Assembly: GCF_048593235.1 (NCBI RefSeq)
Contig: NC_133620.1
Coordinates: 464,099,261 to 464,163,260 of the forward strand
Reading direction: 5' to 3'
DNA length: 64,000 nucleotides
DNA from: Sminthopsis crassicaudata
Lineage: Eukaryota
Shown: positions 2,882 through 36,750 of the stretch, piece after piece
Position numbering within the stretch: position 1 is the stretch's first letter
How the letters are laid out: each line of letters starts with the position of its first letter
Translations under genes and position numbers: made by a program
Notes under the pieces: model-generated
The model's input: only the letters and a program-made list of their open reading frames with translations
What the model was told of the DNA's origin: nothing
Databases searched by the model: none

Positions 2882-5800
2882 CTACAAGGGGAACAGGGTG
2901 TCAGAAGGGAAATGAATAGAGGAACCCACAGGAGGCCACGGTTTACCCCCTAAACCACTGAGAACATGAGACCCAGGGGGAGATCCAAGGTCCAGTATGG
3001 GGCAGGCCGTCTCCTGAGCCAGACGGGGAATGTCCCAAGCCATCTCTGTCACCCACATCCTGCTCCCAGATGGGGAGGACAACCAAGGCTGGGGGAGGAC
3101 GTGGGTGGCGTCCCTGACCTCCCCACCTGGCCTCGGCATATTCCAGGATTCACTAAAGGGACCATCCTGCCTCTATTCCTTCACCCCCGAACGCACAGCC
3201 AGACCTTCCACACACTCACTTGCCCTGCCGCCGCCGCCTCTCCTTCTTCTCCAGTATCCAGTCCCGGCTCTTCTTCAGCGACTTCCCCTTCGCTGTCTTA
3301 TAACGCATCCTGGAGGGAGGAAGATTTGTGAGCTACGAGGTCACGTCCCCCATCCCGCCCTCTCTACCACCTCGGCAATGATCATTCCTTCCCTCTTCTC
3401 CAAGTGCCAGTGGCAGACTGCACACAATGCAGCATTGGCCAGGAGGAGCCCCACTCCCCATGGCGTGCTCTCCTGGGAAGGGCCCGTCCCCCAGACAGCC
3501 CTCCTCTATCCCCGAGCTGCCTCCTGCCCCTCTCATAGCTTCCAACTCCAAGGCCGCCTCTCCATGAAGCTGCCTTTGTCTCTCAGCCAGGAATGATTCT
3601 TCCCTCTCCTCTTGACCTCAGAGATCTGAGACTCACTGTTTTCAATGTTATTCTATTTATCTTTGCCCAGTCTTATCTCCACTGAAAAATTTTAAGTCTT
3701 TACTGTCTCCTTAGACACTCATTCATTAGCTACTATGTGCTTGTTCAATGTCATCAGATGGAGATCCCAGCGTTCCAGCCACTCTGGACCCATGGATACC
3801 TGTGCCTAGTAGCAACTACTTGTTCCAGTAAAGCAATCGGGGCGGAGGGAGTCCCAAAAGGGCAAAAAGGGGCCAAGTGCTGGGAGCCCCCACCCCAAAA
3901 AAGTCCAAGGCGGCACTCCAACAGGTGGCCCACAACTCACTTCAAGTCACTGTGCTGAAGTTAAAATAATTATCTGGCAAGGGCTGCTTTTTAAAATTTT
4001 AAGAAAATGCCCTAGGCTCTAAAAAAGCTGTTAAAATTTGGGAGCAAAGGAAAGTTACACCTGAATGGGAGCCAAGAGGCCAGGCTCAGGCTGAACTGCC
4101 CTAGAGCTGTCACCTGAGCACGCCTCATCCTCCTTGGACCTGTTTCACCACCTGTAACATGACAGGGTTGTGTTCTGACAGCCTAGGACTCAGCTGACAG
4201 ACAGGAGGGCTGGTGGAGCTCTTGCCCTCAGACCAGAGCCCAGAAAACCCACAGATGGGCCAGGCAGCACCCACTCAACAGCGCAGAGGCACTTTGGTGT
4301 CTGAGGCAGGAAAACGCGGCCGCCGTGGCTAAGGACGGCCCCGACGAGAGTCCTTCAGGGATGCTCTTGGTCCCTTGCCCCGGCTGCTAGGGGCAAGCAT
4401 CCCAGCAGCCCCACAGCTCAGAGACGCTCAGGATGACGGCCAGTCTGGGTCTGTGAGGCCATCCATCAAGACCAGGTCGGAACGTTTTGGGGAGTGAGCC
4501 GCACAATCAAGTTTCACTCCCCTCACTTGTTCCAAATCTTTTCTCTCTCCTTCCTTCTTTGGGCCCAACTGTTACAATTAGCAATTCTTAATCCTTTTAA
4601 GCTGCTCCAGACATAAAGGGCAGGAGGAGAGAACGGTTGAAACAGGGAGTCAACACCAGACCCCACAGACTTTTCCCAACACGATCTCACTGTTTAAAGT
4701 AAACCACGGGGAGGACAGGGAAAGCTGACCATCTCTACAAGCTTCCTGCCCCAAGGGGGACTTCCTCCTCCCTGACCATAGTCAGAGCTCTCCAATCTCC
4801 ATCTCCTTCCTCCCTGGGTATTGCCCAAACCAGCCAGGAACAAGGCTGCATCAGAAGTCTACCTTTCCTTGGAGAACTTGGACTCTTTCCTCTCTTGTTC
4901 ATCTCCACACTCAGTGCCCAGGCCCTGCAAACAGAGTCAAGGTCAGAAGGCAGGGAGGGCCCAGTTGTGGGAAGGGCACCAAGCACACCAACCCGAACAA
5001 CTGCCCCCGCCCTGGGTTTGAAGCCGGCCTCTGCCAACTGTCCGGCCCCAGGCAAGTCATCTCCCTCTGTGGGTGGGCCCCTACTTCTGAGGGGGTGTAA
5101 AGAAAGCAACCCCCCCACACACACATATCCAGGAGTTTCTCAGAGCAGGTTTTGGGCCCCTTTGGGGTACCCAGAGACAAGTCCGACAAAACAAAGTATA
5201 AAACCTCCCTTGAGTGACCTAAAGGACCATGCCTCTGGCCGTGCTGGACATTGTGAGTGTCCAGCGAACATTCTCTGACTTCCCAGCCCACCCTGCCCCC
5301 TTTCCTTAGACAGCAAGAGGGACGAGGCACCATGTTCTTTGAACAAGAAGCTCTTCCTTACCGTGGGCAGCACACCCGAAGGCCCAACAAACAGACAGAG
5401 GAAGAATCTGAAGAAAAAGCACATCAAGGAGCTAGTCTTGAAGAAGTAAGTGCCCTCATTTCCCCTGATGCTCCCTTAAGGTAGCGCCGCCCCCGCCACG
5501 TCAAACACACCAGCAGCGTGTGCCCATCTGGATGGCCGTTCTCTCCACCCCCACCTCCCCAGAGACAGGATGACGACCCCAGACTCACTTCTTAGCTTTT
5601 GTGCTGTTGGGGAAGTCCACCACCATGCCTCCAGTGAAGCCGGCCTTCATGGCCTGGGTTGTGATCAGCTCCAACTGTGGGCAGAGAAAGTCCCCCGGGA
5701 GCAGGCTTCAGGAGCGGCCCAACTGCCCCGGCCCCAGCCTCTCCTGAAGCCCGCGGGGCCGTCAGATGCCTCTGGCCCTCGCCAAACCCGAGCGGTAGGG

Positions 5801-8800
5801 ACAGAGCGAAAGGCGCCTTCCCCGAGCCGCCCCAGCCTGGAGGCGCCGCCGACGGGAGCGAGCGTTTCACAACAGGGCAGTTTCCTTGCCTGCCTCGTGC
5901 CCTCCGCACTAAGGACCGTGTCCGCCACGTAGGAAACACATAACAAAGGAGTCCTTGCTTCCACTGTGTGAAAACGACCCGGGCGCCTCACAAGGCTCTC
6001 GGGATTTCCCGAGCTGTGCAGGAGGAGCCTCCCCGGGACATCTTGTGTCCAGACCACAAAAAGAACCTCAACTTCCCACAAGCTGCCCCTGAGCTCCATG
6101 AGCACCATTCCCAGCCTGAGGTGAGACCAAACCCCCCCACCCCACAACAAGAAGTCGGGTCCACGGTCCCCGTGGTGGGAAAGTCCCAAAGCCCCGGAGT
6201 CGCTGCTCTCCTCTGAAGGCTTTTGGGACTCACGTCCCCTCTAGGCAAGGAGAGTCTTACAGAATTATGGTCAACAAGTGCTCAGGCTCCAGTCCGGACT
6301 GGGGAAGGGGGCGCAGTCTTCTTGTCAGACCCGGAGTATGCAGAGATCCAGGACTAGCAAAAGGAGCGCTCCCCCCCGCTTCTAACCAATCACTGGTGGA
6401 CACAACCCTACGCCTTTCACCAACACTCAAAACTGAGGCATGAAGGAAAGGAAAAATCCGCTAAGTCTTAGAAAAAAGGTTTTCAGCCTTTTTAATGCTA
6501 GGAACCAGAGGCCTATGGGTTCCTTAGAAGAGCGAGATTTTTTTTTAAGTATGTGAAATAAAATCCATAGGATTAGTTCAAATAAAGATGGCGCGATATG
6601 GAGAACATCCCTTTCGGGTAGAGGCTGGCCTCGGAGGTCCTCTCCCCCCCTCAGACGCCGGCCGTCCCCTCAGAGTTTGGAGCCCGGCTCCCCAGCTCGT
6701 CCCACGCCAGTGGGCTCACCTGCTCGGCGTTCTCCGGATACAGCTGCAACACCGCTCGAGCTCCTCGGGCCTGCAGGAGAATGGACACTGTGGGTCTCTG
6801 GACAGCCCCCGGGCCACCCCCAAAAGCCAGGAGGGCGCCTACTCACCAGCACAGAATAAAGGGACGAAAAGAAGCAGTGCAGGCGCTTGGCGGGGTTGTG
6901 CGTCCTCTGGTCGGCGTTGCAGAGCCACTGCACGGCGGAGATGCTGACGAAGGACAGAAGGCGTCTTTGGGAGCACGGCTGAACCTGGCAGGCCGGCCTC
7001 CCCGCCCCCCCCCCAGCTGCTCCCTCTCCATCCCCCGCTCCCGTCCAACCGCCGTCCCCTGGAATCCGAGCCTATCGCCTCAGTCTCCTGCCGCCTCTGC
7101 TCGGACCTGGTCGATTTCTGCCATTTAGCCCAAGAACGTCCCCGAAGGGCACAGGTTCACCCTTGAAGGCACAAGATGCTTTTTCTCAGCCCTAGCCTAG
7201 CCAACCTTCCGCTTGCCTTTGCAAGTTGCTTTTCCCTCGCCTCGTATGGGTCTTTGCCTGGATTGTTTCTCCAATTAACTCAAAAATTCACCCTCATTAG
7301 ATAAGGATACAAGCAGCCCCCCCCCCCTTAAAATGTCGGAAAGTTAGACTGTAACTTTCCCCTCCTCTCTCCTGATCTCCTTCCCCAAGAAGTCGTCCCC
7401 AGTGGGAGGAGCGGCTCAGCATCCCTGAAAGACCCTCTGGACTCCCCCCGGGCTTTCTCCCCGTTTCACGTTCCAGTCCAAGGTGACAGAGCGAGGTTAC
7501 CGCTCAGCGCCCTCCACACTCCCCTCCCAGCACCACAAACACTGCACACGCTGCAGCCAAACACAGGACGGCCGAGACCTCTCCGACCACCCGGCCGGAG
7601 ATCCAGACTAGAGAGCCCCAGGCGAGTCTTCCCGCCTCTGGGCCCGCCCCCCCCCCCTCGGCTCCCACCGGCACGGCCCCTCCCCCGACACCGGGCCCAG
7701 CGTACCTGATACAGCCGTCGAACGTGCCGGGCCTGAAGGGGATGCCCTGGCCCATGTCCCCCTTAAGCAGGTCTCCCTCCACCTCGCGGTCCACGGCCAC
7801 ATCTGCGTGAGAGACGATGGCACGAGGGGCTCGAGCCGGCCCTCGCCCCCCCACACACACACACAGTGCCCGCCGCCCCGCCGGCCCACTCACCCAGCAT
7901 GGCGGAGCTGATGTCGATGCCCACCCAGTGGTGCCCCTGCCCCGAGATGAAGTCGCCACTGAGCCCGGAGCCACAGCTGGAAGGCAAAGTGGGACGAGAG
8001 TCAGGGGAGCGCGAGCAGCCCCGAGGGCGCCGGAGACCTCCCGGGGAAGCCCCCGCCTTACCCCACATCCAGCAGGAAGCAGGGCTGGTCCTCGGGCAGA
8101 CTGAGGAGCTCCACGGCCCGCTCCGACATCTGGGTCTGGATCTCAATCATCCGGGAGCTGGGGGGAGGGGGGAGCACACGGTGGCTCAGCCCTGTCTGCA
8201 GCCAGAGGCAAACAAGGCGGGGCCAGAGCTCCGGCTCATCCCTCAGCAGCCCTTCTACCTGGCACTTCCCACGGCCCCTCACACAGGAGCCTCAGGCTGC
8301 AGGCCCCAGCGTCACCTAGGGCCCTCTGCCGGTGCGCCGGACCCCTCCCCAGAGCGCCCCCCATGCCCCTCCCCCTCCCCCACTATTCCCCTACCCGGAT
8401 CTATTCCTGCCCCTGCCCCTCCCCCAGCAGGCACCCCCCCTCGGCGGAGGAATCATCAGGGTCCTTCTGCTGCACAAAGGCCGCCACTCCCGTGTCCCGA
8501 GGATCTCTCGGCAGGGCCCGCGAACAGCGTGGTCAAGGCCCCGGGCTCCCAGTCCTGGCCCATGTTCCCCCTCAGAACCGGAGGCTGAGAGGCCCCATGA
8601 CCCCCCCCCCTTCAATTCCTTATGCCACAGACACCCACCCCACGGGCCATCGGGGAGCTCCCGAACCTCTCCCCACGCTCACCCACTTAGTCGCTGGGCC
8701 TCTGCCGACCCCATCTCCTTTTGCCCTCACACCCACCCTGGGGGCGGGGGGGTGCTGCCGTTATTCCCATTTTACAGCTAAGAAAACTGAGGCAGGTCCA

Positions 8801-9045
8801 GGGAGAACGAGCGGACTCCAGGCCCCGCCCCCTCCCGGCTCCCCAAACTTCCGCCAGGCCCGGCTCTTACTTGTGAGTGTACTTCCGGGCTTCTTCCTCA
8901 TTGTAAAACTGCGGGGGAGACAGAGAGAGAGAGGGCGCCAATAAGAGGGGGGTCGGAGGCAGCGGGGCCGGAGCTCGGGGGAACGGGAGAGGCTCACCAG
9001 CTCAGGGGGCCCGCGGTGCTCCGGCCTTCGGCCGCCGCACGCCAT
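2827..9045 (-). CDS. BUD23: 18S rRNA (guanine-N7)-methyltransferase BUD23/WBSCR22, 12 coding exons, 849 nt = 282 aa + stop
   Basis: Exons (minus strand): 9045-8998, 8908-8871, 8157-8062, 7976-7894, 7802-7706, 6943-6847, 6770-6720, 5674-5589, 5407-5362, 4924-4863, 3309-3220, 2881-2827. All introns are GT-AG and phases are compatible. Protein starts [26 protein letters not shown], carries SAM-binding motif LLDVGCGSGLSG and [29 protein letters not shown], and ends [17 protein letters not shown], matching human BUD23 as I recall it. Confidence 0.98.
3220..3309 (-). CDS. BUD23: BUD23 exon 11 ([30 protein letters not shown])
   Basis: AG/GT boundaries, 90 nt; basic NLS-like segment. Confidence 0.95.
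4863..4924 (-). CDS. BUD23: BUD23 exon 10 ([21 protein letters not shown])
   Basis: tgtttgcag acceptor, gtagac donor, 62 nt; phase fits both neighbours. Confidence 0.9.
5362..5407 (-). CDS. BUD23: BUD23 exon 9 ([15 protein letters not shown])
   Basis: AG/GT boundaries, 46 nt. Confidence 0.95.
5589..5674 (-). CDS. BUD23: BUD23 exon 8 ([29 protein letters not shown])
   Basis: AG/GT boundaries, 86 nt. Confidence 0.96.
6720..6770 (-). CDS. BUD23: BUD23 exon 7 ([17 protein letters not shown])
   Basis: AG/GT boundaries, 51 nt. Confidence 0.96.
6847..6943 (-). CDS. BUD23: BUD23 exon 6 ([32 protein letters not shown])
   Basis: AG/GT boundaries, 97 nt. Confidence 0.96.
7706..7802 (-). CDS. BUD23: BUD23 exon 5 ([31 protein letters not shown])
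   Basis: AG/GT boundaries, 97 nt. Confidence 0.96.
7894..7976 (-). CDS. BUD23: BUD23 exon 4 ([27 protein letters not shown])
   Basis: AG/GT boundaries, 83 nt. Confidence 0.96.
8062..8157 (-). CDS. BUD23: BUD23 exon 3 ([32 protein letters not shown])
   Basis: AG/GT boundaries, 96 nt. Confidence 0.96.
8871..8908 (-). CDS. BUD23: BUD23 exon 2 ([13 protein letters not shown])
   Basis: cccccgcag acceptor, gtaaga donor, 38 nt. Confidence 0.95.
8998..9045 (-). CDS. BUD23: BUD23 coding exon 1 ([16 protein letters not shown])
   Basis: ATG at 9045 in GCCATGG context; donor GTGAGC. Confidence 0.95.
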
Positions 9046-9300
9046 GGCTACACTTCACGACTGCCTTCAGCGCGGCATCCGCGTCATCTCCCAGCGCCGC
9101 CCTTAGGACCCAACCGCCGCTTCGGGGCCACGAATTGCGTCATATTCCCGCGCAGGCGCAAGCGCACTGCAGCCCGTCCTAGCCCCGTCCCTTCCTGAAC
9201 CGACTTCTTCCTCTACGCGATTGGCCCTGAGCAGAGTTCGTCAGGTAACCCGCCCCGTCTCATTGGCCGGCCCTTCCGACTCCACCCCGCCCGGCGCAAG
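9046..9300. promoter_or_regulatory. Bidirectional promoter shared by BUD23 and DNAJC30
   Basis: 255 bp between divergent ATGs. NRF1-type CGCGCAGGCGCA (9149-9160), CRE/AP1-like TTGCGTCA (9135-9142), two inverted CCAAT boxes (ATTGG 9220-9224, 9262-9266), GC box (~9249-9257), YY1 motif CAAGATGGCGGCC (9297-9309) overlapping the DNAJC30 ATG; no TATA box. Confidence 0.9.
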
Positions 9301-9960
9301 ATGGCGGCCCTAGTGGGCCGGCGGTGTCCGCCGGTGTGGTGGCCCGCTGGGCTTCAGGAGGTCCGGACCAGCTCCTCCGGCAGAGGCGGCTACTGGACCG
9401 GGAAGGACCAGGCAAGCGCTGGCTCCTCCCGGTACTCGCGCACGGCGTTGTACGACCTGCTGGACGTCCCGGTCACGGCTACCCAGGCGCAGATCAAGGC
9501 GGCCTACTACCGGCAGAGCTTCCTCTATCACCCTGACCGCAACTCGGGCAGCGCGGAGGCGGCGGAGCGCTTCACGCGCATCGGCCAGGCCTACATGGTG
9601 CTGGGCAGCACGGCGCTGCGCCGCCAGTACGACCGCGGCCTGCTGGGCGCCGAGTACGCGCAAGTCACCACGCACGCGCCCCCGTCCCCTCGGACCCCGC
9701 GGACCGAGTCTGCGCACTCCGCCTACGGCCCCCAGCGCGCGCGGCCCGCCCCGGGCGGCCAGCACATGTTTGACTTCGACGCCTTCTACCGGGCGCACTA
9801 CGGGGAGCAGCTGGAGCGCGAGCAGCGGCTGCGGGCGCAACGCGAGGCCCTGCGCAAAGCCCGCGAAGTGCGCGCCCGCTCGGGGCTGCGCTGGGATGAC
9901 AGCATGCTCCTGGGCCTAGTGCTGCTGCTGGGCTTCATGGGCTTGTCGCACCTCAAGTAG
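9301..9960 (+). CDS. DNAJC30: DnaJ (Hsp40) family member C30, mitochondrial; intronless, 219 aa
   Basis: J-domain [47 protein letters not shown] with HPD motif, conserved [23 protein letters not shown] segment and hydrophobic C-terminal TM helix; head-to-head with BUD23 as in human. Confidence 0.98.
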
Positions 9961-10274
9961 TCGGACTGCCGGGGCTTCGGTCCCGCCCTGCGCCTGCAGG
10001 AGGACGCGGGGGGCGGGGTCCCCAGAGCCAAATGAACCGTGTCTCAATGCATCCTGAGCTTCTGTCTTTGTTATCAGTCACCGGCTGCAACCACAGGGGA
10101 TGGCGGTGGGTCTGTGCGGCCTCGCCCGCTGTAGATGCCTTGTGTCCAGCGCCCCATGGGAAGCAGTGGGCTGAACCGGAAGACCCTCCGGGGTCCTCTC
10201 TGTGTCTGAGATTTTATTGAAGCCGAAGGTGCCAAGGAAGCCGCCGGTTGCTTTCTCTCCTGGCCAGTTTCCCC

Positions 10275-24633: not shown

Positions 24634-25316
24634 ACACACACACAAACACACAAAACACACACACGCCCCTTCCCCTCTGTCCTCTATAGGGCAAGCCCAC
24701 CCCTCCGCGCGCTGGCCGTGTAGAGCCCCGGCCCCTCCCCCTCTGTCACCTACAGAATGCCCCCACCCGCCCCCTCCCGTCCGGTCCCCACAGACTCCTG
24801 GGGCCTTCCCGGTCGGCCCCCTCCCGCCCCCCCGCCGAGTGCCCAGCCGCCCCTCCCCCGAGCCCGGGGAGGATGGATGCACACCTGTCCTCTCCCCCAC
24901 GGCCTGGGAGCCCCGACTAGGCGCGGCCACACCGCCCGCCGCCCCCCGGGGGTCCCCCCAGACCACAGCGCCTCCGTGCTCGGCGCCCCCTCCCCCAGTC
25001 CCGAGCTCCGGCCTGGTCCCGAGCCCCCAGCCCCAAGCCCCGGGGGGACCCCCCAGCAGGGGCAAGTCCCAGGGCGCCTCCCTCCCCGCCCCGGGCCCAG
25101 AGGCGGAGCAGGGCGGGGCGGGGCGGGGCCGGCCGCGTCTACACGGCCCGCCCCGTCTACACCGCTCCTACCTACCTTCCTGCTGAGCCTCACGATCCGG
25201 TCGAGCTTGGGCTCGTCCTGCAGCAGATCCCGGAGCTGGCCCGTGCTGAGGATCCCGAAGCGGCCCCCGGGGCTCCCGGGGTCCGGCCCCGCGCGCACCG
25301 CCCGGGCCCGGTACAT
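17612..25316 (-). CDS. VPS37D: ESCRT-I subunit VPS37D, 4 coding exons, 804 nt = 267 aa + stop
   Basis: Exons (minus strand): 25316-25176, 20616-20445, 19189-19107, 18019-17612; GT-AG introns with compatible phases. Protein MYRARAVRAGPDPGSPGGRFGILSTGQLRDLLQDEPKLDRIVRLSRK-FQGLQLEREACLASNY...-EQMEQLLLGEQSLEAFLPAFQRGRALAHLRRTQAEKLQELL (Mod(r) domain) with Pro-rich tail ending SEPPHR*, matching recalled human VPS37D. Confidence 0.97.
19107..19189 (-). CDS. VPS37D: VPS37D exon 3 (VNVQRWNPQCALNGLRAELEEAEQEAE)
   Basis: AG/GT boundaries, 83 nt. Confidence 0.95.
20445..20616 (-). CDS. VPS37D: VPS37D exon 2
   Basis: ttctttctag acceptor, gtaagt donor, 172 nt. Confidence 0.95.
20635..20712. repeat. 20-bp minisatellite with alternating variants (40-bp higher-order unit)
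   Basis: tccatctgtc-caaccgtcca / tccatctgtc-cagacagcca, ~4 units, followed by a looser (TCCA/TCTA)n tract. Confidence 0.85.
21331..21582. repeat. ~21-bp degenerate minisatellite (consensus ~GAATTGTACCCCAAAATGGGG, ~11-12 units) inside a CORE-SINE
   Basis: Direct reading of periodicity; MIR/Mar-type SINE text flanks both sides. Confidence 0.85.
23271..23685. repeat. Tandem triplication of a 142-bp unit containing a MIR-like fragment
   Basis: gaaatggaaagtttaagtgactggccc recurs at 23281, 23423 and 23565; copies nearly identical. Confidence 0.95.
24591..24663. repeat. Compound (CA)n microsatellite
   Basis: Direct reading. Confidence 0.95.
25176..25316 (-). CDS. VPS37D: VPS37D coding exon 1
   Basis: ATG at 25316, 47 codons, donor GTAGGT. 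Confidence 0.95.
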
Positions 25317-25425: not shown

Positions 25426-28400
25426 CCGCCGCTCTTAAAGGAGCCGCCGCCCCGGCCGCCCCGACCCCGGGGGCCCAGAAGCCCCCACTCCTCGGCCCGA
25501 ATCGCGGAGGCCCAGTGATCCCCGGCAAGCGTCGCCTCTGCCAGGCGAGCGGCATCCAACCCTGATCCCGGTTCACAACTTCCTGCCTTAGTCACCAAAC
25601 CCCTGGCCTGAAGACTGAAAGGGAAACTGAGGAAGGAGCCCTTAGTCTGGTCGGCTGGGATAGACCCAGCGCTGGTCTGTTCGGGGAGGCACAGCTCTAA
25701 CGCTGGGGAAACTTCCGGCTAGTGGTTGAAACCCGACCCTGCACTCGGAGAGTCCCTGCACTCGGGCAGATTTGCGCCCCGGGATGGTCTGAGCTTCTGG
25801 ACAATCCCTTCTGCCTGAAGGGCAGGAATGGGGGTGGGGGGAGAGATCCGGCCCAGCGCCTTTCCCTGGGGAGCCCCTGCTCCTGCTCTGATGGAGGAAG
25901 AGTCTGCCTTCCAGAAGCCTTCGATCCAGGGAACTTGAGACAATCCCAATTAGTCAATAAGCATTTATCGAGCACCTCCTGTGTGCCAGACACTGTGCTA
26001 AGCGCGCTGCTCCAGGAATTCTGCGCTCAGAGAGAGTGGGGGAGAGGGGGGAAGGGAAAGATCTTGTCTCTCGGAAAGCCCAATCTGATGGGGAGAGAGA
26101 GAGAGCAGACTCTTGAGCCCAGGTAGGGGAATGTCCTGAAAGAAATACGAACTACCAAAATACCAAGTCAGAGACCAGGAAGGAAACAGGCATTTATTGA
26201 ACACCTGTTGTGTACCAGGCATTTTACAAATGTTTTATCTGATCTTCACGATTTTCCAGTTGAGGAAACTGAAACAAAGAGATTAAGTGACTTGCCCAGA
26301 ATCTCACTGTCTGTGGGTGCATGGTAGGTGATTTGAACTTAGGTCTCCCTGACTCCAGGCCTAGCACTTTATCCTCTGGGCTATCCAGCTGCCCAAAAGA
26401 TAAATCAAGGGCAAAAAACCATAGCTCATTTATTTCATATTAAACTTTAAAAAAAAAAGTACCTACTGTGAGCAGAACAAATTCTGGGCTTGGATCTCTG
26501 GGAGAACTACAAAGCTTCAATGGTCAAAAACGCCTCCCTAAAAACCTCCAACTTAACACCCCCTCCCCTTTCAGGAAGCCAGTCTGAAGAGGATTGTTTA
26601 GGAGAAGGAAGGCTCCCCTACTGCCCCCCCCCCCCCCCGGGTTCCTTACTCGACTCATCCACAGTATCCACACTAGTCTCACTCTCATCCCTAAATTTGG
26701 AAGTAATGGAAACACTTCCCTATCCCCAAAGGGCTGTACTTCCAGCTATCGTTCATCTCTGTGGCTGGCCAGTCTCTGTCATCTTCTGGAAAGAATATCC
26801 AATCCAGAACATAACTAGGGCTCTCAGGTGAAATTGATGAAGAGGAAGGAGCAGGAAATCCCCAGTTAGGGCAGGAAACAGTGGTGTGGGCTTTCCATGC
26901 CTTTTGTCTGTCCCCATGTCCCTCTCTGTCTTTCTTTCCTCCATGTCCTTGTCCTTATTCCACGTCTGACCATCCCTTCTTCCATGTCTCCAACCCCATC
27001 ACCCATACCTCCATGTCCTTCTTGTCCATCCCTTGGTGTCTCTGTTCCTTCCCCTGTCCCCCCCCCTCCCCACCACCCCCGTCAGGTTCTTATTGCTGTC
27101 TAAACTTTCATCTCTAGACAATCAGTCCACATTTACTCTGTATCAGACACTGGATTTGGCACCAGGGACCCAGAGTCTCCCTGCCTTCAAGCGGCTTATT
27201 TTTTCTGCCAGGTGAATACAATTCACAGTTAACCACATCCAGAAGAGAGACAAAATCAGGATTAGGAAAGGAGGTAGTTATGAACAGCTGGGAAAATTGG
27301 GGAGAGCATCTTGCTGGAGATGGTTTGAGTTAAGCCTTGAAGGAAGCTGGGGTTTTTAAGAAGCAGAATAAGGGGGGAGGGAGGTCACTACCAGCACTAA
27401 GCATTTTGTGCACAAGGACAGAGATGGGACATGAACCGTTGTGGCTAGTTTGCTGGGAACATAAGGGTGCTGAGGGAAATAACGCTGCTGATTGCCTTGG
27501 AAGGAGAGGCTGGAGCCCAATGGGGAATGGCTCTAAGAACCTAACAGAAGAATTATTATTTTATTTTAAGAACAAAGAGGAGCTGGTGAAGCTTCTTGAA
27601 TCTGTCTCTTTCCCACCCTACCCCCATGTCTCTATCCCTTCTTCCATGTTTTTTTTAAGTGTTTGGGGAGAACTTGGGCAAGTCCCTACCATCACCCCGC
27701 CATCTTGGCTCTGCCTCTTCTATGTTCTTTTTTCTCTCCCAAACCCTGTCCTTGCCTGACTAATTCTAGGCTGGAAGAATAATGATATTCCCTCAGGCTA
27801 AGTTTTTTCTTCCTTCCTTGAGATTTAAACTAAACCTCAGAGACTAAACTCTGCTTTGCCAGGTTCCCATCTAGCTTTTCTTTCATGGATCACTTCCTAT
27901 AGAATGGTCCCTATGATGTCTACTCCAAGCACAGGGAGAGTTTCCCCAGCAGAATGAGTGGATGAGACACAAAGGTGGCCGAGGAAGGAATACTTAGCAC
28001 CTGGTCAGATGTGGAAGATGCCAGTCCACTGCATCCTGCAGTATCCTGACTTTGTCTCACCCCTCGACTTCAGTGATTTTGGAAGAGAGAGTGAAGCTGA
28101 TGGCTTTGGCCAATTCTGTCTCATTTAAATCCGATTTCCAAGGAGTCAAGACCTCACCTGTAATGTCACTGGTCCTCTTTGAAATGGAAAATGAGCAACT
28201 GCTTGCACTCGTTTAGGTGGTAAGAATCTCAAGACCCTCTCGGTGTGCCCAACACAATGCTTTGAGCACAGAAAATGGTTAATATCTGCTTGTTGATTAA
28301 ATTCAATTGAATCATTTTCAGAAAGTGCTTCAGGATATTTCCGAGGTAACCTAAGGGAACCTCGGAGCTGGATGCCCTTTCACCCTAGGACCCTGCAGCT

Positions 28401-28672
28401 TCCTCTTCATGGGAAAAGGAGCCCCCTTGCCCAACTGCAAAATCCATGCCCCTTCAGGCTAAGCCAGTTCAGAGAAGAGCTCACTCTTCAGACTTCACAC
28501 CTGGCCCTTGGGCCTTTCTAATGTACTTGTCATGTAATTAAACATGTGTTAAAATTACATATATGTGTGTCTTATTTTCCCCTCTTAGACCTTAAGTCCA
28601 ATAAGAGTAGGACTGTGTCCCATTGAAGCTTTATAGTTCTCCCAGAGATCCCAAGCCTAGGATGTGTTCTAC

Positions 28673-29081
28673 NNNNNNNNNNNNNNNNNNNNNNNNNNNN
28701 NNNNNNNNNNNNNNNNNNNNNNNNNNNNNNNNNNNNNNNNNNNNNNNNNNNNNNNNNNNNNNNNNNNNNNNNNNNNNNNNNNNNNNNNNNNNNNNNNNNN
28801 NNNNNNNNNNNNNNNNNNNNNNNNNNNNNNNNNNNNNNNNNNNNNNNNNNNNNNNNNNNNNNNNNNNNNNNNNNNNNNNNNNNNNNNNNNNNNNNNNNNN
28901 NNNNNNNNNNNNNNNNNNNNNNNNNNNNNNNNNNNNNNNNNNNNNNNNNNNNNNNNNNNNNNNNNNNNNNNNNNNNNNNNNNNNNNNNNNNNNNNNNNNN
29001 NNNNNNNNNNNNNNNNNNNNNNNNNNNNNNNNNNNNNNNNNNNNNNNNNNNNNNNNNNNNNNNNNNNNNNNNNNNNNNNNN
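28673..29081. other. Assembly gap (N)
   Basis: Run of N. Confidence 1.
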
Positions 29082-30589
29082 AAAATAAGTGAGCTATGGT
29101 ATAGGAAGAAAAGAGCAGATCACAACAGAATGGTAGTTCTCTGGGGTTAGAAAATCTAGAATAAGTGTTTTCTCTCTGAATATGTTTCTTCACCTCTAGA
29201 ATTAAGCTAGATGACCTCAGCAGTCCCTTCTAGTTCCTGGTCTATGAATGGACTCTTGGAAAGCCTCACAAGACTGGCCCCAGTCTTGTCTCTTCAGTCA
29301 ACCTAGAAGACTCCCTGGCTCTATGAAAGTCCTGAATTCACCTGCAGAGTTGACCAACCCAAATGCCTGTATTAACTGGCCATTGGCCCAATGTTGTATC
29401 CCATTTAGGAGAGAGAAAAAGGGACAAAGCTCAGTTGGGATTTGGGCCAGTATGGCCAAGAACTGCATGCAAGAAAAGGTAGGAGAAGCTAGTTATGGAG
29501 CCAGTAATTTGCAAGATTATATGATTTCTCCTGAGCTCTCCATAGGTGTTCAGAAAGGAAGGTGTGAAGCCCCTGGATGTTAGGCAGCAGGATCCCCTCA
29601 GTATGCAGGATGAAGGGTCAGTCTTAAAAAGGATGATGGTAGCTCAGTATGAGGGATGGGAGTGAGGAACATGTTGGAAACAAGGGTTTACTGTTGGGTA
29701 AATGAGTTTGGGGTCAGATGAGAGGATGAGAGAAAGAGGAGGAAGAGCTGACTGAGGAAGGGCCTGTGCTGGGTGAAAGGTGGATGCTGTCAGGGATGGG
29801 GCTCAGTAATAAAATCATCACTCAATGAAACCCTACAGATTAGGGATTTAACTTTCCTCCCTTATTTGCAGAAGTGAAGGACTATGGGTGTGAACACTAC
29901 ACACTTTGGGCAAGTGAATTAGTCTCCCTAAGTAGACTTCAGTTCCCACCTATGTAAGGTGAAAGGTTATGACAAACTGGCCCCTAAGGGCTTTGGAGTT
30001 TTAAAGCTATGTTCCCATGATCCTTCATTCTGTCAGGTGTGAGTGATATGCTACTTGGTCTTGCTGAGCTGTTTTTCTTTTCTCTTTATTTTTTATTCTT
30101 TGGCATAAAGAATGCCCCTGCGTGTGGAGGGGGAAAGGAATATACTGCATAATGAATGTGACAGAAAAACAAAACCTATAAATGAAAATGTATTTAAAAG
30201 AATAGTGGCTTGGTGCTGGCACAAAGCAAGCTCTTAATAAATATTGGTTGGTTTACTAATTGATGAGAACCGTAGGATCATTTCTGGGGACAGAAGTCTC
30301 AGCTGATGGATGGATGGTTGGATGGATGATTATCGAGGATGGGAGCCCAAGATTAGGAATAAAGGCTCAGTGTGGTGATAGCACTTTAGTACTTTCAGGG
30401 GCATGGGTTCAGGGTAAAGGAGAATGGCCCTGTGTCCTGGCAGAGGGACTAGAACCTCAAGAACCCAGGCTATAAGCAATCTGAGAGATTGCTCCCTCCC
30501 ACTGGTTGGTAGGATACCCCAAATGGTTCCTTCCTCTTCCCTGGGCTCCACAGCTTAGGGGCTGGGCACCCAGAAACTCAGGCGGTGGA

Positions 30590-30760
30590 GTGAGGTGAAA
30601 GGTAAGCAGGCACGAGAAGAACCCAGGACTGCGATTGGCAGAAGCACCCAGCTCCTGCTCCCGGGCATGGCTACCCCACAGGCTGTTCGCCCGCTGATCG
30701 GCTGCCTCCCACGTGCTAAGGAGAGAAGGAGGCACCAGAGAGAGGGTCAAAGGACACCTT
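30590..30760 (+). promoter_or_regulatory. MLXIPL: Candidate MLXIPL alternative (ChREBP-beta, exon 1b) promoter
   Basis: Seen: DR1 AGGTGA-A-AGGTAA (30593-30605), ChoRE-like CACGAG-aagaa-CCCAGG (30611-30627), inverted CCAAT (30634-30638), E-box CACGTG (30710-30715), DR1 GGGTCA-A-AGGACA (30744-30756), local CpG retention. Knowledge: eutherian ChREBP-beta has an upstream promoter between VPS37D and MLXIPL exon 1a with an E-box/ChoRE and an HNF4A DR1 site. Orthology is inferred. Confidence 0.65.
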
Positions 30761-33309
30761 CAAGAGACCGGCAACAGGCAGCCAGGGGACAGATCGTGGG
30801 GAACTGCTAGAAAGCTCAGAGCCTCGGGCAGAGCAGCACGCAGAGCCCTCTGGTGCCTGAGCAGAGCAGAGTGACTTGGGCAGCCGGGGCAAGGAAGAGG
30901 GACAGAGCATCCCGAGCTACCCCTGGGACTTCCCCAGAAGGGGCAAGTGAAGGAGCAGCCACTGCTACAACCCACATCTCCCAAGGAAACCAGGTGAGGA
31001 ACCTTTGAATTGGGAAAGGGAAGAAAAAGTGGTAGAGAAAAGGAGGGAGCTAATGAAGGAGGGAGCAGGGGGCCCAGCACAAGATGATTTCCTCTCTGGT
31101 TATCTAGTCTATAATTGAGCCCAGGAGCTGTCAGAAACAAGGAGCTGTCTCTTGGACCTCAGTCTTGCCATCTCTTAAATAGGTATGGAGGAGTGGTTCT
31201 CCAGTCTCAGTAGGAGCCAAGAGCCAGGAATTCCTGGCCCCTATAGTGCCAATGGGGAACACTCAGCTTCAACTCCCCTAGGAAAAATGAGTTTAAATCC
31301 TTGGGAGAAAGCACAGAAGAAAGGATCCAAGCATTTGGGCCCCCAGCACCTAATCTACTATATATACATATACATTCATACTTATTTGTTTGTATATTTG
31401 TGTGTGTGAGGGGTGATGAGAGTGGGAGACATCTACATTTGTCTATTTATTCCATTTGCTAACTAAATTCTCAAAAGTCAAACTGAGACAGAAATCTAAG
31501 AATCAGGACCAGAGAAAGAGCTTTTGCAGTTAAAGGATTCTGTGGGTTGGAGGGAGGCAGCTCAAGGAAACCAAGAGAGGCCCCCTACTCTTAAGGTTTC
31601 CCTTTCCATGAGAAATATCAGCTTCCAAGTGACTAATGTTAGGTATGAGCAATGGCAATGGAGAACTGAGTTCCCCAGCTCCCACATGGCTGAGTCAGAG
31701 GAGGATAAGATTCTTTGTTCAAGGGGATAGAATTGTGGGATGGGGGAGCCTGGGATTTGGTATACCCAAGCAGCACAACAACCAGGTGTCCAGCCAAGTT
31801 GGTGGGAAAGGAGAATGAGGGGGCGGAGGGAAACTGACCTCAAGAAGTCCAGCCCTTTTCACCTGGGATAAGTGAAAGTAATGGAAGATTTCTTATTGGT
31901 CAATAGACCAATCCGGGTTATTCTTATTGCCTGGGAAGTTAAATCTCAGTTCTCCTTATCCCTCTCCCTCCTGCCAAAGGATTATTCTTGTCTTACCTTT
32001 TAAAGAAAATTTCAAGGCTGAGTCTGAGTTAAGATTTAGCAGTCCTAGGAGTCTCAGAGTTCCCAACTGAACAGGTGACTTGTTTAAGCAATCTTTCCTC
32101 CTAGCTCCACCTTGCTCATTTGTAAAATGAGGCAATTGATGTTCCTGGAGGGTTTCTGGTGAGATATGTTACCCACCTCCTGACAGGGAGATAATAGACA
32201 CAAAATGCAAAGGGATATATTTCTGGACACAGCATTTGTTTTTGCTTTGATCATGTTTATTATTATAAGGATTTGATTTGGATTTTTTCCTTTCTGTTAA
32301 TTCAAGGAAAGGCTATCAGAGGAGGAAAGGGAATTGACAATAGTGATTTAAAAAAAAAAAAAAAAAGAGCCAATGAAACATTTTTTAAAAATAGAAGGAA
32401 GTTCATAAAGAAGTCTAGACAAGCAGGATAGTTTTGAAAGCACTTTGTAGAATGTATAATATACTTTCTTTAAAAGCAATTGTTCTGAAATGGGGATAGC
32501 TGGTTTCTTCTTTTTATGTCTTATTATGTGTATGGAAATGCTCTCCTCTTTTGGTGTTTAAGTTCAGAATTTTTTTAAAAATTTAAATTTAAAAGTAAAT
32601 AAAAAAGTTAAAAAAAATTTTAAAGTAAAAAAATTAAAAGTAAAAAAAAAATTGGATTGGGTGACCTTCAAATTCCCTTTCCACTCCAACTACAGGTTCT
32701 TCTTTATAATACAGCCCTTTCATGAGCTTCAGAGTCCCCAGGACTCTGGGGCCAGACAGAGGGCATGGCCAGCATCAGTTTGACCATAGAAGGAAGAAGT
32801 AGGAGTTATAAGTCAGTAACTTAGTAGTAAGTCAGTAGTGCTACGTGTAGATGAGACTGGGTGGAGCTAGGTGATTCAAGTCCTTCTGTGATTGACCTGA
32901 AACCTTTTCTTTGCTTCCCCTTCCTTCCTCAACCCAGATTTCTGACTTTCAAAAGACCTTTTAACTTCCACATATGCAGGGGATCAGGGCTCAGATCAGG
33001 GTCCTGAAAAGATCCAAAAAACTATTCAATGAAACTCTTATTCAGGGGAGACCATTTCTCCCTTGCCCTTTAGTTCTAAAGCTCTTGTCCATCTAGCTGG
33101 GATATTTTCACATTGCCATGTATGAAACATTTGAATTTCTCTTGGGCAGAAAAGAGAGCATTCCTGCCCCCCTAGGGAGTCACAAGTGGGTTTAGAGCAG
33201 GTTTTTTCCCTTGGTGGGGCTGCGGTGCATCGAACTATCCATAATCTCAATTACCCTCTATGGCCAAAGCTAGGTATGGTCTATGACTGTTATTAAGAAT
33301 CAATAGATT

Positions 33310-33441
33310 GGGGCGGTTAGGTGGTGCAGTGGATAAAGCACCAGCCTTGAAGTCAGGAGGACCTGAGTTCAAATCTGACCTCAGAAACTTAAGATTTCCT
33401 AGCTGTGTGACCCTGGGCAAGTCACTTAACCCCAACTACCT

Positions 33442-33475
<34 letters not shown>
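33310..33475 (+). mobile_element. WSINE1-type CORE-SINE, full length, with poly(A) tail and TSD
   Basis: GGGGCGGTTAGGTGGTGCAGTGGATAAAGCACCAGCC...CCTCAGC-A(n); TSD aagaatcaatagat (33295-33308) / aagaatcagtagat (33476-33489). Confidence 0.9.
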
Positions 33476-33479
<4 letters not shown>

Positions 33480-33834
33480 ATCAGTAGATCACAGGTAATA
33501 TAGGTTAGTCTGTGACTACAGTTAAAGTTATTGTAAATGTGGGGATTAGTGTGTCTAGGGTTAAGACTAAGGTCTCACCTAGGTTTTAGATAAACTGCCC
33601 CCTTGTTTCCTGTACATGACAATTTATTTCTAGCCTTCATGACTTTATGTGGACCCCAATATGTGTATATATAAGGGAGGAAGGGGCATAGTAAATAGCA
33701 CCCTAGATTTGGAGGGCAATCAATTACTAGCTTTATCCAGAGCAGGTCTCTTAATCTCCATCAAAAGAATTTTGCAAAACTTAAAAAACTATAAACATCT
33801 TAGTTCTTATTATTATTATGTTATTGTTATTTTC

Positions 33835-33977
33835 TTTTTTTTCCCCTGAGGTTGGGTTAAGTGACTTGCCCAGGGTCACACAGCTAGGAAGTGTTAAGTA
33901 TCTGAGACCAGATTTGAACTCAGGTCCTCCTGAATTCAGGGCTGGTGCTCTATCCATTGTGCCACCTAGCTACCCCC
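33835..33977 (-). mobile_element. WSINE1-type SINE, antisense
   Basis: Reverse complement of the same consensus with T-rich tail. Confidence 0.88.
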
Positions 33978-36750
33978 TGGACAATTATACTTTTAAAGGA
34001 ATTATTTTATTCATTAGTTTTTTTTTTCCATTTCATCAATTCTATTTTTCAAGGAGTTGTTTTCTTCAATCAATTTCTGTGTTTCCTTTTCCAAACTCTC
34101 CTGCAAAGCTTTTATTTCCTTTCTTCATTTTTCTCCTAATCCTTTTAAGATCCATTTAGAATTCTTCCAAAAGAACCTTTTGAGTTGGAGACCAGTTCAT
34201 ATCCCACTTTGAGGCTTCATTTGGAAATATTTTGCCTTTGGGGTTCTTCCCTGTCTCCATAATAGTTATCTATGATCAAAGCTCTTTTTGCTTTTTTGTT
34301 CATTTTTAAAGGTTGGGGTCTGCTCCTAAGGCACAGGGAAGATTGTCCTGAGTTTCCTCTGCTAAACTGGAGCCAGTGCTGCAGGCTTCCCCACTGGGCT
34401 AGTTGAGCTGGCCAAGCTCCTCTAATTATATTGGGATTCATGGCTCACTATTTGCTTTCTGTAGTTGCAATGAAGGTCTCACAGCTAGTCTGCTGATCCA
34501 TTGGCCTTCTGAATCAGGATAGAGTAACCAATGTTACTATATTTTGGCTAAGAACTTCCCACCATATTCCCTGCACAGGGCCAATCTCTGGCCTGAGCCT
34601 CCCCTCCCTGTACCTTCATTGGGCCAGTTCCCCCCTCCCCCGCCCCTGCCCAATTGGGACAGCCTTTTCCTGAAATCCTTCCAAGACATCTTCTGCTGGA
34701 AGTTTATTACATTCCAAATATATGTGGGTTCTGTCACTTCAAAATGCATTCTGAGACTTGATCTAGTGTTAATTCTGAAGGAAGCTAGGAAGAACTCAGA
34801 CAAAGTCTTGTCTATTCTCTGTTATCTTGGATCCACCCCCAATATTTTTCTAAGACATTCAGAAGCCTGAAATTCAAAGCCAGGGTGAAAAGGTATATAT
34901 ATGGTCCAATTCCCCCATCAAATGCACATGCACAAATGTGAGGGTGAGGCAACATGTACCCATACTTCCCTGGAACCTAATGGAACTAGAGGTTTAGGCT
35001 CAACTGGTTTCAGTTAAATATACTCCCATAATTACTGTTTATGGGACTTTAGGTAAATTTCTTGGCTATCTGAACTTCACTCTCCTCATCTGTAAAATGA
35101 GAGGATTGGACTAGATGGCCTCTAAGCTCTCTTTCAGTTCTAAAGCTGTGATCCTCTTTGACCTAAAGAGTTCTTTTACTCTTGACTGCTGGGGTCCCAT
35201 GACCTCTGTTTGCCAAAGTCTATAACCTCTGAAATAGGCACACCTAAGAAAATAGAGAAGGACCCAGGGGTTGTATCAAGTATGAAATTATTGCTACTCT
35301 TATGACTGATTCATCACAAACAAACCTTTCAAGGGTCTTTGTGCTTGAACTTTGGGCGACTAGGTCCCCACATAATCTAGAATACAAGACTTCTCCAGGG
35401 ACATACATAATACAGTACAATCCAGAGACATGCAGGAAAAACCACTCAGGAACACCAGAATCTCTCTCACTTGTATCATTCTATTGCCTCTGTCCTAATT
35501 CAACTTGTCCATAGCCAACCTATAAAACAAGCCAAAAAACTTCTCCCATCTTCTATGTACTGCCTGAAGCCAGAATAAGAAAGGGATTGTGGCCCTATTC
35601 AGAGATTTTGACCTCAGCTGCTGACTCAGAGACCTCCCCAAGATGATGATGAGAATAAAAAAGAATAACTAGAAACTATCTGGCCCAAGAAATTTGGAGG
35701 TGACCAAGGCTTAAGTTGTAGAAAGTAGAAAGCTATTGAGGGTCATAAAATGTCCTATATATAGTCCTGTAAGCTGCGATTTCTCATTCCTATATCTTCA
35801 GCCAAGAAACATACATGGCTTACCGATGATTCAAGGTTAATCATTATCATCTGTAACACACCTAAATTGCATTTAATATTTTTCCAAATCACTTTCCTCT
35901 CCAATTTTACCCATGATTTCCATAGTATTTCTGAGCTAGAGGCACAGCAGGGAGAGATTATTATTTGTGACTCAATGGAAATAGTAAGAAACTTGAAGTT
36001 ATAAGAGATGAGTTCAAATTCTAACTCTCCCATTTCCTGCCTCTGTGATCTTGGGTAAATTATTTAACCTGTCCTGGGCTTCCCTTTCCTCATCTATAAA
36101 ATGAAGGGATGGATCTAGATGACCTCTGATGTCCTATCCTGACCTGGGTCTAGGATTCTATGAAGGTATTAACTATCTGTGAATGTGAAGGAAGGAGGAA
36201 CCTGTCACACACAGAGTAAGTGACAGAGAGAGATATCATGGGATGCTGATTGTCATTTGCCAGAGTTTTAGACATTTGCAGGGAATGCTAAGGTCAATGA
36301 CTTACCCAAGATCATACAGCCTATGTGTTTCAGAGGCAGAACTTAAGCCCAGCTTTGAATTCCTCCTCAATCCTCGCTTTTGTACTGGGGATCCCCTAGG
36401 GTCCTGACCCCAGAAGAGAACATTCCCTGAATAGGTAGCACTGATAAGGATGGAATAAATGATACCTTTCCCTGAGCCAGCCTCAAAGATAAATGAGTTA
36501 GAGAGGGAACAAACCATTCTCAGATGAGGGATCTGCCTGCCTCCCACCAAAGAGCTCAACATGGTCGGGCCACTCACAGTAATGACCCCCATCATCTGCA
36601 TAACAAGATTTCCCACCCATTGTCCTGTTAGATTTTCAATACATCCCCTTTTAGAACAGCAGGGCCAGCAATGTTGTCTTTGTTTGACACTTGGGGAAAC
36701 TAAGGCCCCTAAGTCATTTGCCTAAGTTCATTCAGCAAGTAATGGAGCCT

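Follow-up and report, generated by a model that had tools for sequence, protein, structure and literature searches.

The ChREBP-beta promoter of eutherians

Sugar-driven lipogenesis is amplified at the step of ChREBP-beta, which is also a marker of de novo lipogenesis in adipose tissue and liver. In the ChREBP-beta promoter of humans the ChoRE has been placed at -95 to -79, with E-box 1 at -84 to -79, and DR1-C at -50 to -38 (Meng et al., PMC4814918); the ChIP primers used for this promoter are printed in the same paper (PMC4814918). The functional ChoRE has been remapped in two independent papers, in the rat to -109 to -92 and in the mouse to an E-box at -98 to -93 (PMC4725739, PMC7290792). 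An exonic ChoRE at +158 to +174 of the mouse was originally described by Herman in 2012, and its position is given here as reported in the papers that cite that work. Cooperative activation by ChREBP and HNF4-alpha has been reported both for ChREBP-beta and for Pklr, which encodes L-type pyruvate kinase (PMC4814918). A literature search joining ChREBP with a marsupial, made with a query that discriminated poorly, found no paper.

The locus described here, from the fat-tailed dunnart Sminthopsis crassicaudata, shares with Pklr the arrangement of a ChoRE adjoining an HNF4-alpha DR1 (PMC4814918). It differs from that module in being part of another gene, with no sequence relationship, and in that its target would be the alternative promoter of the regulator itself, forming a feed-forward loop. 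The closest comparison is with the ChREBP-beta promoter of mouse, rat and human, and a stretch at ~30590-30993 of the window (the whole 64,000 nt of DNA analysed) is very probably the dunnart orthologue of this MLXIPL beta promoter and its non-coding exon 1b, with a mechanism that is likely to be of the eutherian type.

Locus and gene context

The gene order in the window is BUD23 (minus strand), DNAJC30 (plus), VPS37D (minus) and MLXIPL exon 1a (plus), with MLXIPL exon 2 lying beyond the end of the window. A VPS37D protein of Sminthopsis crassicaudata matches the window at 99%, and the locus retrieved for this protein (GCA_048593235.1) has 100% identity to the window; the VPS37D search used the last exon alone as query. 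The positions that define the interval are as follows.

9301-9960, plus strand: DNAJC30
17.6-18.1, ~19.1 and ~20.3-20.6 kb, minus strand: remaining VPS37D exons (four coding exons in total)
25176-25316, minus strand: first coding exon of VPS37D, ATG at 25316, divergent from MLXIPL
59619-59914, plus strand: MLXIPL exon 1a (ChREBP-alpha start), 98 codons plus 2 nt, donor AG/GTGAG

The start codon of VPS37D is 5.4 kb away from the candidate element (30.6-31.0 kb), which precedes exon 1a by 28.8 kb, in agreement with the ~29 kb given in a first-pass annotation of this DNA. The element is therefore situated between VPS37D and exon 1a, in the MLXIPL sense, and this is the interval that holds exon 1b in mouse, rat and human; the distance to exon 1a is greater than the 17 kb of the mouse. 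The description of the DNA as non-repetitive and CpG-retaining was likewise borne out, the 411-nt stretch at 30590-31000 being present in one copy only within the window and containing 13 CpG, where the kilobases on either side have 4 and 2. Runs of N occur in the window at 28673-29081, 56413-56865 and 57478-57623.

Promoter elements in the dunnart

All six features that had been named from the sequence were found in place when the letters of the window were re-read. Those of the promoter are given below, with the parts of each that are shared among therians.

30593-30605: upstream DR1, AGGTGA-A-AGGTAA, identical in six of six marsupials
30598-30607, plus strand: AAAGGTAAGC, the 3' part of the upstream DR1; as AAAGGT[A/G]AGC, invariant in the nine aligned therians, this is the only portion common to eutherians
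30609-30616, plus strand: GGCACGAG, invariant in nine of nine aligned therians; 5' half of the 'ChoRE-like' site
30611-30627: 'ChoRE-like' CACGAG-n5-CCCAGG, the 3' half CCCAGG not kept in eutherians
30633-30638, minus strand: inverted CCAAT box, GATTGG (ATTGG at 30634-30638), invariant in all aligned therians
30676-30683, plus strand: CCACAGGC, invariant in nine aligned therians
30699-30715, plus strand: orthologue of the functional ChREBP-beta ChoRE, an E-box-like hexamer, a 5-nt spacer and CACGTG (30710-30715)
30716-30743, plus strand: ChoRE-DR1 spacer, near-invariant in therians to ~30738
30744-30756, plus strand: DR1, GGGTCA-A-AGGACA, orthologue of the human HNF4-alpha site DR1-C (-50 to -38)

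The printed human primers allow these elements to be placed on the published promoter. The forward primer of the DR1 region matches window 30708-30727 at 20 of 20 positions, the reverse-complemented primer of the ChoRE region matches 30715-30734 at 20 of 20, and for the reverse complement of the DR1 primer 16 of 20 positions agree with 30738-30757, so that the dunnart span 30708-30757 is the same 50 bp as the human amplicon of -86 to -37. From these matches and the identical spacing it follows that the CACGTG at 30710-30715 is exactly the published E-box 1 and the second DR1 exactly DR1-C. The dunnart ChoRE at 30699-30715 is equivalent to human -95 to -79, to rat -109 to -92 and to the mouse E-box at -98 to -93, and as in these species an E-box-like hexamer is followed after 5 nt by CACGTG, with DR1-C 28 nt downstream of the E-box. 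The 'ChoRE-like' site at 30611-30627, which the first-pass annotation had listed, did not stand as the functional ChoRE: only its CACGAG half is kept, and the orthologue of the functional element is the one at 30699-30715. The inverted CCAAT box is a putative site that probably binds NF-Y. Rabbit, which was read separately from the nine-therian alignment, has CCACAGGA in place of CCACAGGC.

Two differences from the eutherian promoter concern the DR1 sites. The dunnart DR1-C agrees with the eutherian GGGGCA-A-AGGACA at 12 of 13 positions, and its 5' half-site, GGGTCA where eutherians have GGGGCA, is the nearer of the two to the consensus. The dunnart lacks the 5' half-site of human DR1-B (window 30737-30749): this is GGATCA in eutherians but AGAGAG in all six marsupials, and it is at this place, the last bases of the spacer (~30739-30743), that marsupials and eutherians differ. 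As judged from these alignments, human DR1-B is not conserved in marsupials and the therian-wide constraint is on DR1-C only.

Conservation among marsupials and eutherians

Loci extending 10 kb upstream of VPS37D, located by way of VPS37D proteins, were compared between the dunnart, five further marsupials (Sarcophilus, Antechinus, Notamacropus, Dromiciops and Monodelphis), eutherians (Mus pahari, rabbit and four assemblies of the P0021 VPS37D cluster) and two monotremes (platypus and echidna). In every therian locus the order of the block in the MLXIPL sense is ChoRE, a spacer of ~21 nt and DR1. A core of ~75 nt is more than 90% identical between marsupials and eutherians; the core letters were compared from the loci of the other species, dunnart places 30699-30740 being masked with N in the scripts. 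The only collinear matches between dunnart 25600-35300 and the eutherian flanks are at 30523-30696 and 30743-30897, on either side of the masked core. This direct alignment covers mouse-type, rabbit and cetartiodactyl-type loci, with the human sequence reached through its primers, and it bears out the expected alignment to the eutherian exon 1b region. In the 10-kb alignment of six marsupials the identity common to all three distant species is greatest in 30517-30716 (0.75) and 30717-30916 (0.72) and is 0.0-0.6 elsewhere in the interval, with the 5' end of VPS37D alone being higher. An nhmmer profile of nine therian sequences found a eutherian locus held out of the profile at E=1.5e-60. Taken individually the motifs are short and the 'ChoRE-like' site has a mismatch, but the identity of the core, the recovery of the held-out locus and the restriction of the collinear dunnart-eutherian match to this block within ~10 kb refute a chance cluster of transcription-factor motifs in neutral DNA, a reading to which virtually no probability can be given.

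Predicted exon 1b and its donor

The exon that would be transcribed from this promoter can be outlined by transfer of the published start sites and by the conserved 5' splice site.

30791-30807, plus strand: predicted transcription start zone, at ~30791 by human numbering and at 30807 by the RACE start of the mouse
~30791/30807-30993, plus strand: predicted exon 1b, non-coding, with a length of 187-203 nt according to the start used
30841-30852, plus strand: exonic block CAGAGCCCTCTG, 11 of 12 bases invariant in marsupials and eutherians, Mus pahari having G at the second base
30991-30999, plus strand: 5' splice site CAG/GTGAGG, exon end at 30993, eight of nine consensus positions

The predicted start zone is 79-93 nt after the E-box, as in the promoters of mouse, rat and human, and the predicted exon resembles theirs in being ~170-200 nt long and without ATG. 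A scan of the dunnart letters found no ATG between 30741 and 31052; the predicted exon contains an open frame of 39 codons. The absence of an upstream ATG was considered as a conserved feature and is a weak one, the tammar and Dromiciops having a uORF of three codons and Antechinus an ATG near the start zone. In marsupials the reverse complement of CAGAGCCCTCTG with its flanks (30836-30857, minus strand) resembles a CTCF core at ~12 of 14 positions, counted by eye.

The donor CAG/GTGAGG is the only one to score at least seven of nine between 30780 and 31400, and it is kept in six of six marsupials, spanning the split between Australidelphia and Didelphimorphia. Two observations bear on its orthology to the mouse donor. 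The published primer of mouse exon 1b has an exact match in Mus pahari that is followed 5 nt later by CAG/GTGAGC, and the base with which the exon ends in mouse corresponds, column for column of the multiple alignment, to window 30993. The splice site that the first-pass annotation had placed at 30993/30994 is thus the orthologue of the donor of mouse exon 1b. In marsupials 281-284 nt separate it from the E-box, as against 265 in Mus pahari. A reading in which the human and mouse beta primers lie end to end, with the donor after GTGAGG, was ruled out, the mouse donor being orthologous to CAG/GTGAGG. The mouse ChoRE of +158 to +174 maps to window 30981-30997, where it overlaps the donor, and the dunnart keeps only its CAGGTG E-box; such a loss agrees, at the level of sequence, with the papers that call that element weak or non-functional. 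In Monodelphis (L002:~1470-1800, GCA_027887165.1) an uninterrupted poly-G run of ~330 nt lies inside the orthologue of exon 1b, the donor after the run being intact; this run may be an artefact of the assembly or a genuine expansion of a G-tract.

Donor usage among eutherians is less uniform. The published human beta primer contains CCAGGTGAGG. Two NCBI models of MLXIPL start inside the block (L010:1922-2283, GCA_048773025.1, 913 aa; L012:1922-2283, GCA_009834535.1, 900 aa), with a coding sequence whose initial ATG lies, in both, 55 nt upstream of the E-box and which runs through ChoRE and DR1. They are probably an annotation artefact that makes the beta promoter and exon 1b coding. At L010, the only locus analysed for frame, the model keeps its frame only if a second donor is used, 23 nt 3' of the mouse-orthologous one. 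The human primer and this frame together indicate that donor choice varies among eutherians, some of which seem, from their sequences, to use a nearby downstream donor. In contrast to these eutherians, with a second donor ~23 nt downstream, the dunnart, as known from its sequence, has a single donor, none other being found in the scan of 30780-31400.

Sequencing runs were also sampled. Four runs of one study, each of 0.65-0.85 G letters and none on record as RNA, held 80-85% of the sampled words of 30760-30993, and none of these words was present in 15 further runs labelled with that species. An unenriched genomic library of 0.65-0.85 G letters could hardly hold the stretch, which makes an enriched library likely, and the four runs are probably RNA or chromatin-enrichment libraries.

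Proposed mechanism and alternative explanations

The synteny, the human primers with their identical spacing and the direct alignment to eutherian loci uphold the identification of this stretch as an orthologue of the MLXIPL exon 1b promoter; its sequence orthology, its syntenic position and the deep conservation of both promoter and donor are direct observations. We infer from them that transcription, splicing partner, factor binding and glucose response in the dunnart follow the eutherian pattern. Glucose-activated ChREBP-alpha/MLX would bind the ChoRE at 30699-30715 and HNF4-alpha the DR1 at 30744-30756, NF-Y would probably bind the inverted CCAAT box, and transcription would start near 30791-30807. 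An exon of ~190 nt would then be spliced from 30993 to exon 2, with exon 1a skipped, and translation from the Met of exon 4 would give a constitutively active ChREBP-beta.

It may be asked whether the orthologous block acts in marsupials only as a distal glucose- and HNF4-responsive enhancer, for the exon 1a promoter or for VPS37D, without a stable exon 1b-exon 2 mRNA. Such a role would suit the 28.8 kb that separate the element from exon 1a, as against 17 kb in the mouse, and the extent of conservation, which reaches beyond the putative exon on both sides. Marsupial conservation of 0.59-0.60 continues for ~300 nt 3' of the donor (31000-31300), for example at GGAAAGGGAAGAAAAAGTGG, so the edge of the exon is not marked by conservation, and a further intronic regulatory element may lie in 31000-31300. 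Against it stand a consensus donor, in the place orthologous to that of the donor of mouse exon 1b and invariant in six marsupials, and the conservation of exon-internal blocks such as 30841-30852, and we consider this explanation unlikely.

Considerably less probable again is that the stretch is the promoter of some other transcript (a lncRNA that is not annotated, or one related to VPS37D and upstream of it) and has no more than motifs in common with the beta promoter. On the other strand VPS37D does start at a distance of just 5.4 kb, but the block aligns base by base with the eutherian exon 1b promoter at identical spacing, its conserved donor is in the MLXIPL sense, and eutherian MLXIPL gene models begin within it. 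The dunnart element is therefore best regarded as a genuine orthologue of the known eutherian switch, its function being presumed from that orthology.

Age of the promoter

ChREBP-beta has been dated to the tetrapods from the conserved ATG of exon 4 alone, in the one evolutionary study found, whose scope did not extend to the promoter or exon 1b (Singh and Irwin 2016, PMC4766361). The dunnart stretch is the marsupial counterpart of the second MLXIPL promoter, so that the switch, as DNA, is older than the marsupial-placental split. This had been anticipated in the first-pass annotation, and for the DNA the synteny, primer matches and alignment bear it out; the glucose feed-forward would follow by analogy with eutherians.

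In the platypus, MLXIPL exon 1a (tblastn 2e-20) lies 5.7 kb from VPS37D (L007:3917-4312, 4313-10000), and the interval between the two genes is complete and without N. When the 24-kb platypus locus was searched with BLAST and with the nine-therian nhmmer profile, neither found the exon 1b promoter block. Two platypus CACGTG sites were considered as orthologues of the E-box and rejected as non-orthologous, both being situated within SINE-like repeats. The echidna flank contains neither the block nor exon 1a and is therefore uninformative on age. We tentatively suggest that the exon 1b promoter may be a therian innovation, made after the monotreme split in an interval that is 5.7 kb in the platypus. 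The published tetrapod origin of the isoform is qualified by the failure to detect the promoter in the platypus. If the suggestion is correct, the ChREBP feed-forward loop was put together in the therian stem lineage and not with the tetrapods as published. The start codon in exon 4 of which the promoter makes use is far older, being tetrapod-wide (PMC4766361).

Implications

The module of ChoRE, DR1 and CCAAT box, together with the donor, has remained nearly unchanged over roughly 160 million years of therian evolution. Constraint on this scale separates elements that have been debated experimentally, the upstream ChoRE and DR1-C being kept and DR1-B and the exonic '+158' ChoRE not. It also brings out further invariant candidate motifs in this promoter, namely GGCACGAG, the inverted CCAAT box, CCACAGGC and, at 11 of its 12 bases, CAGAGCCCTCTG.
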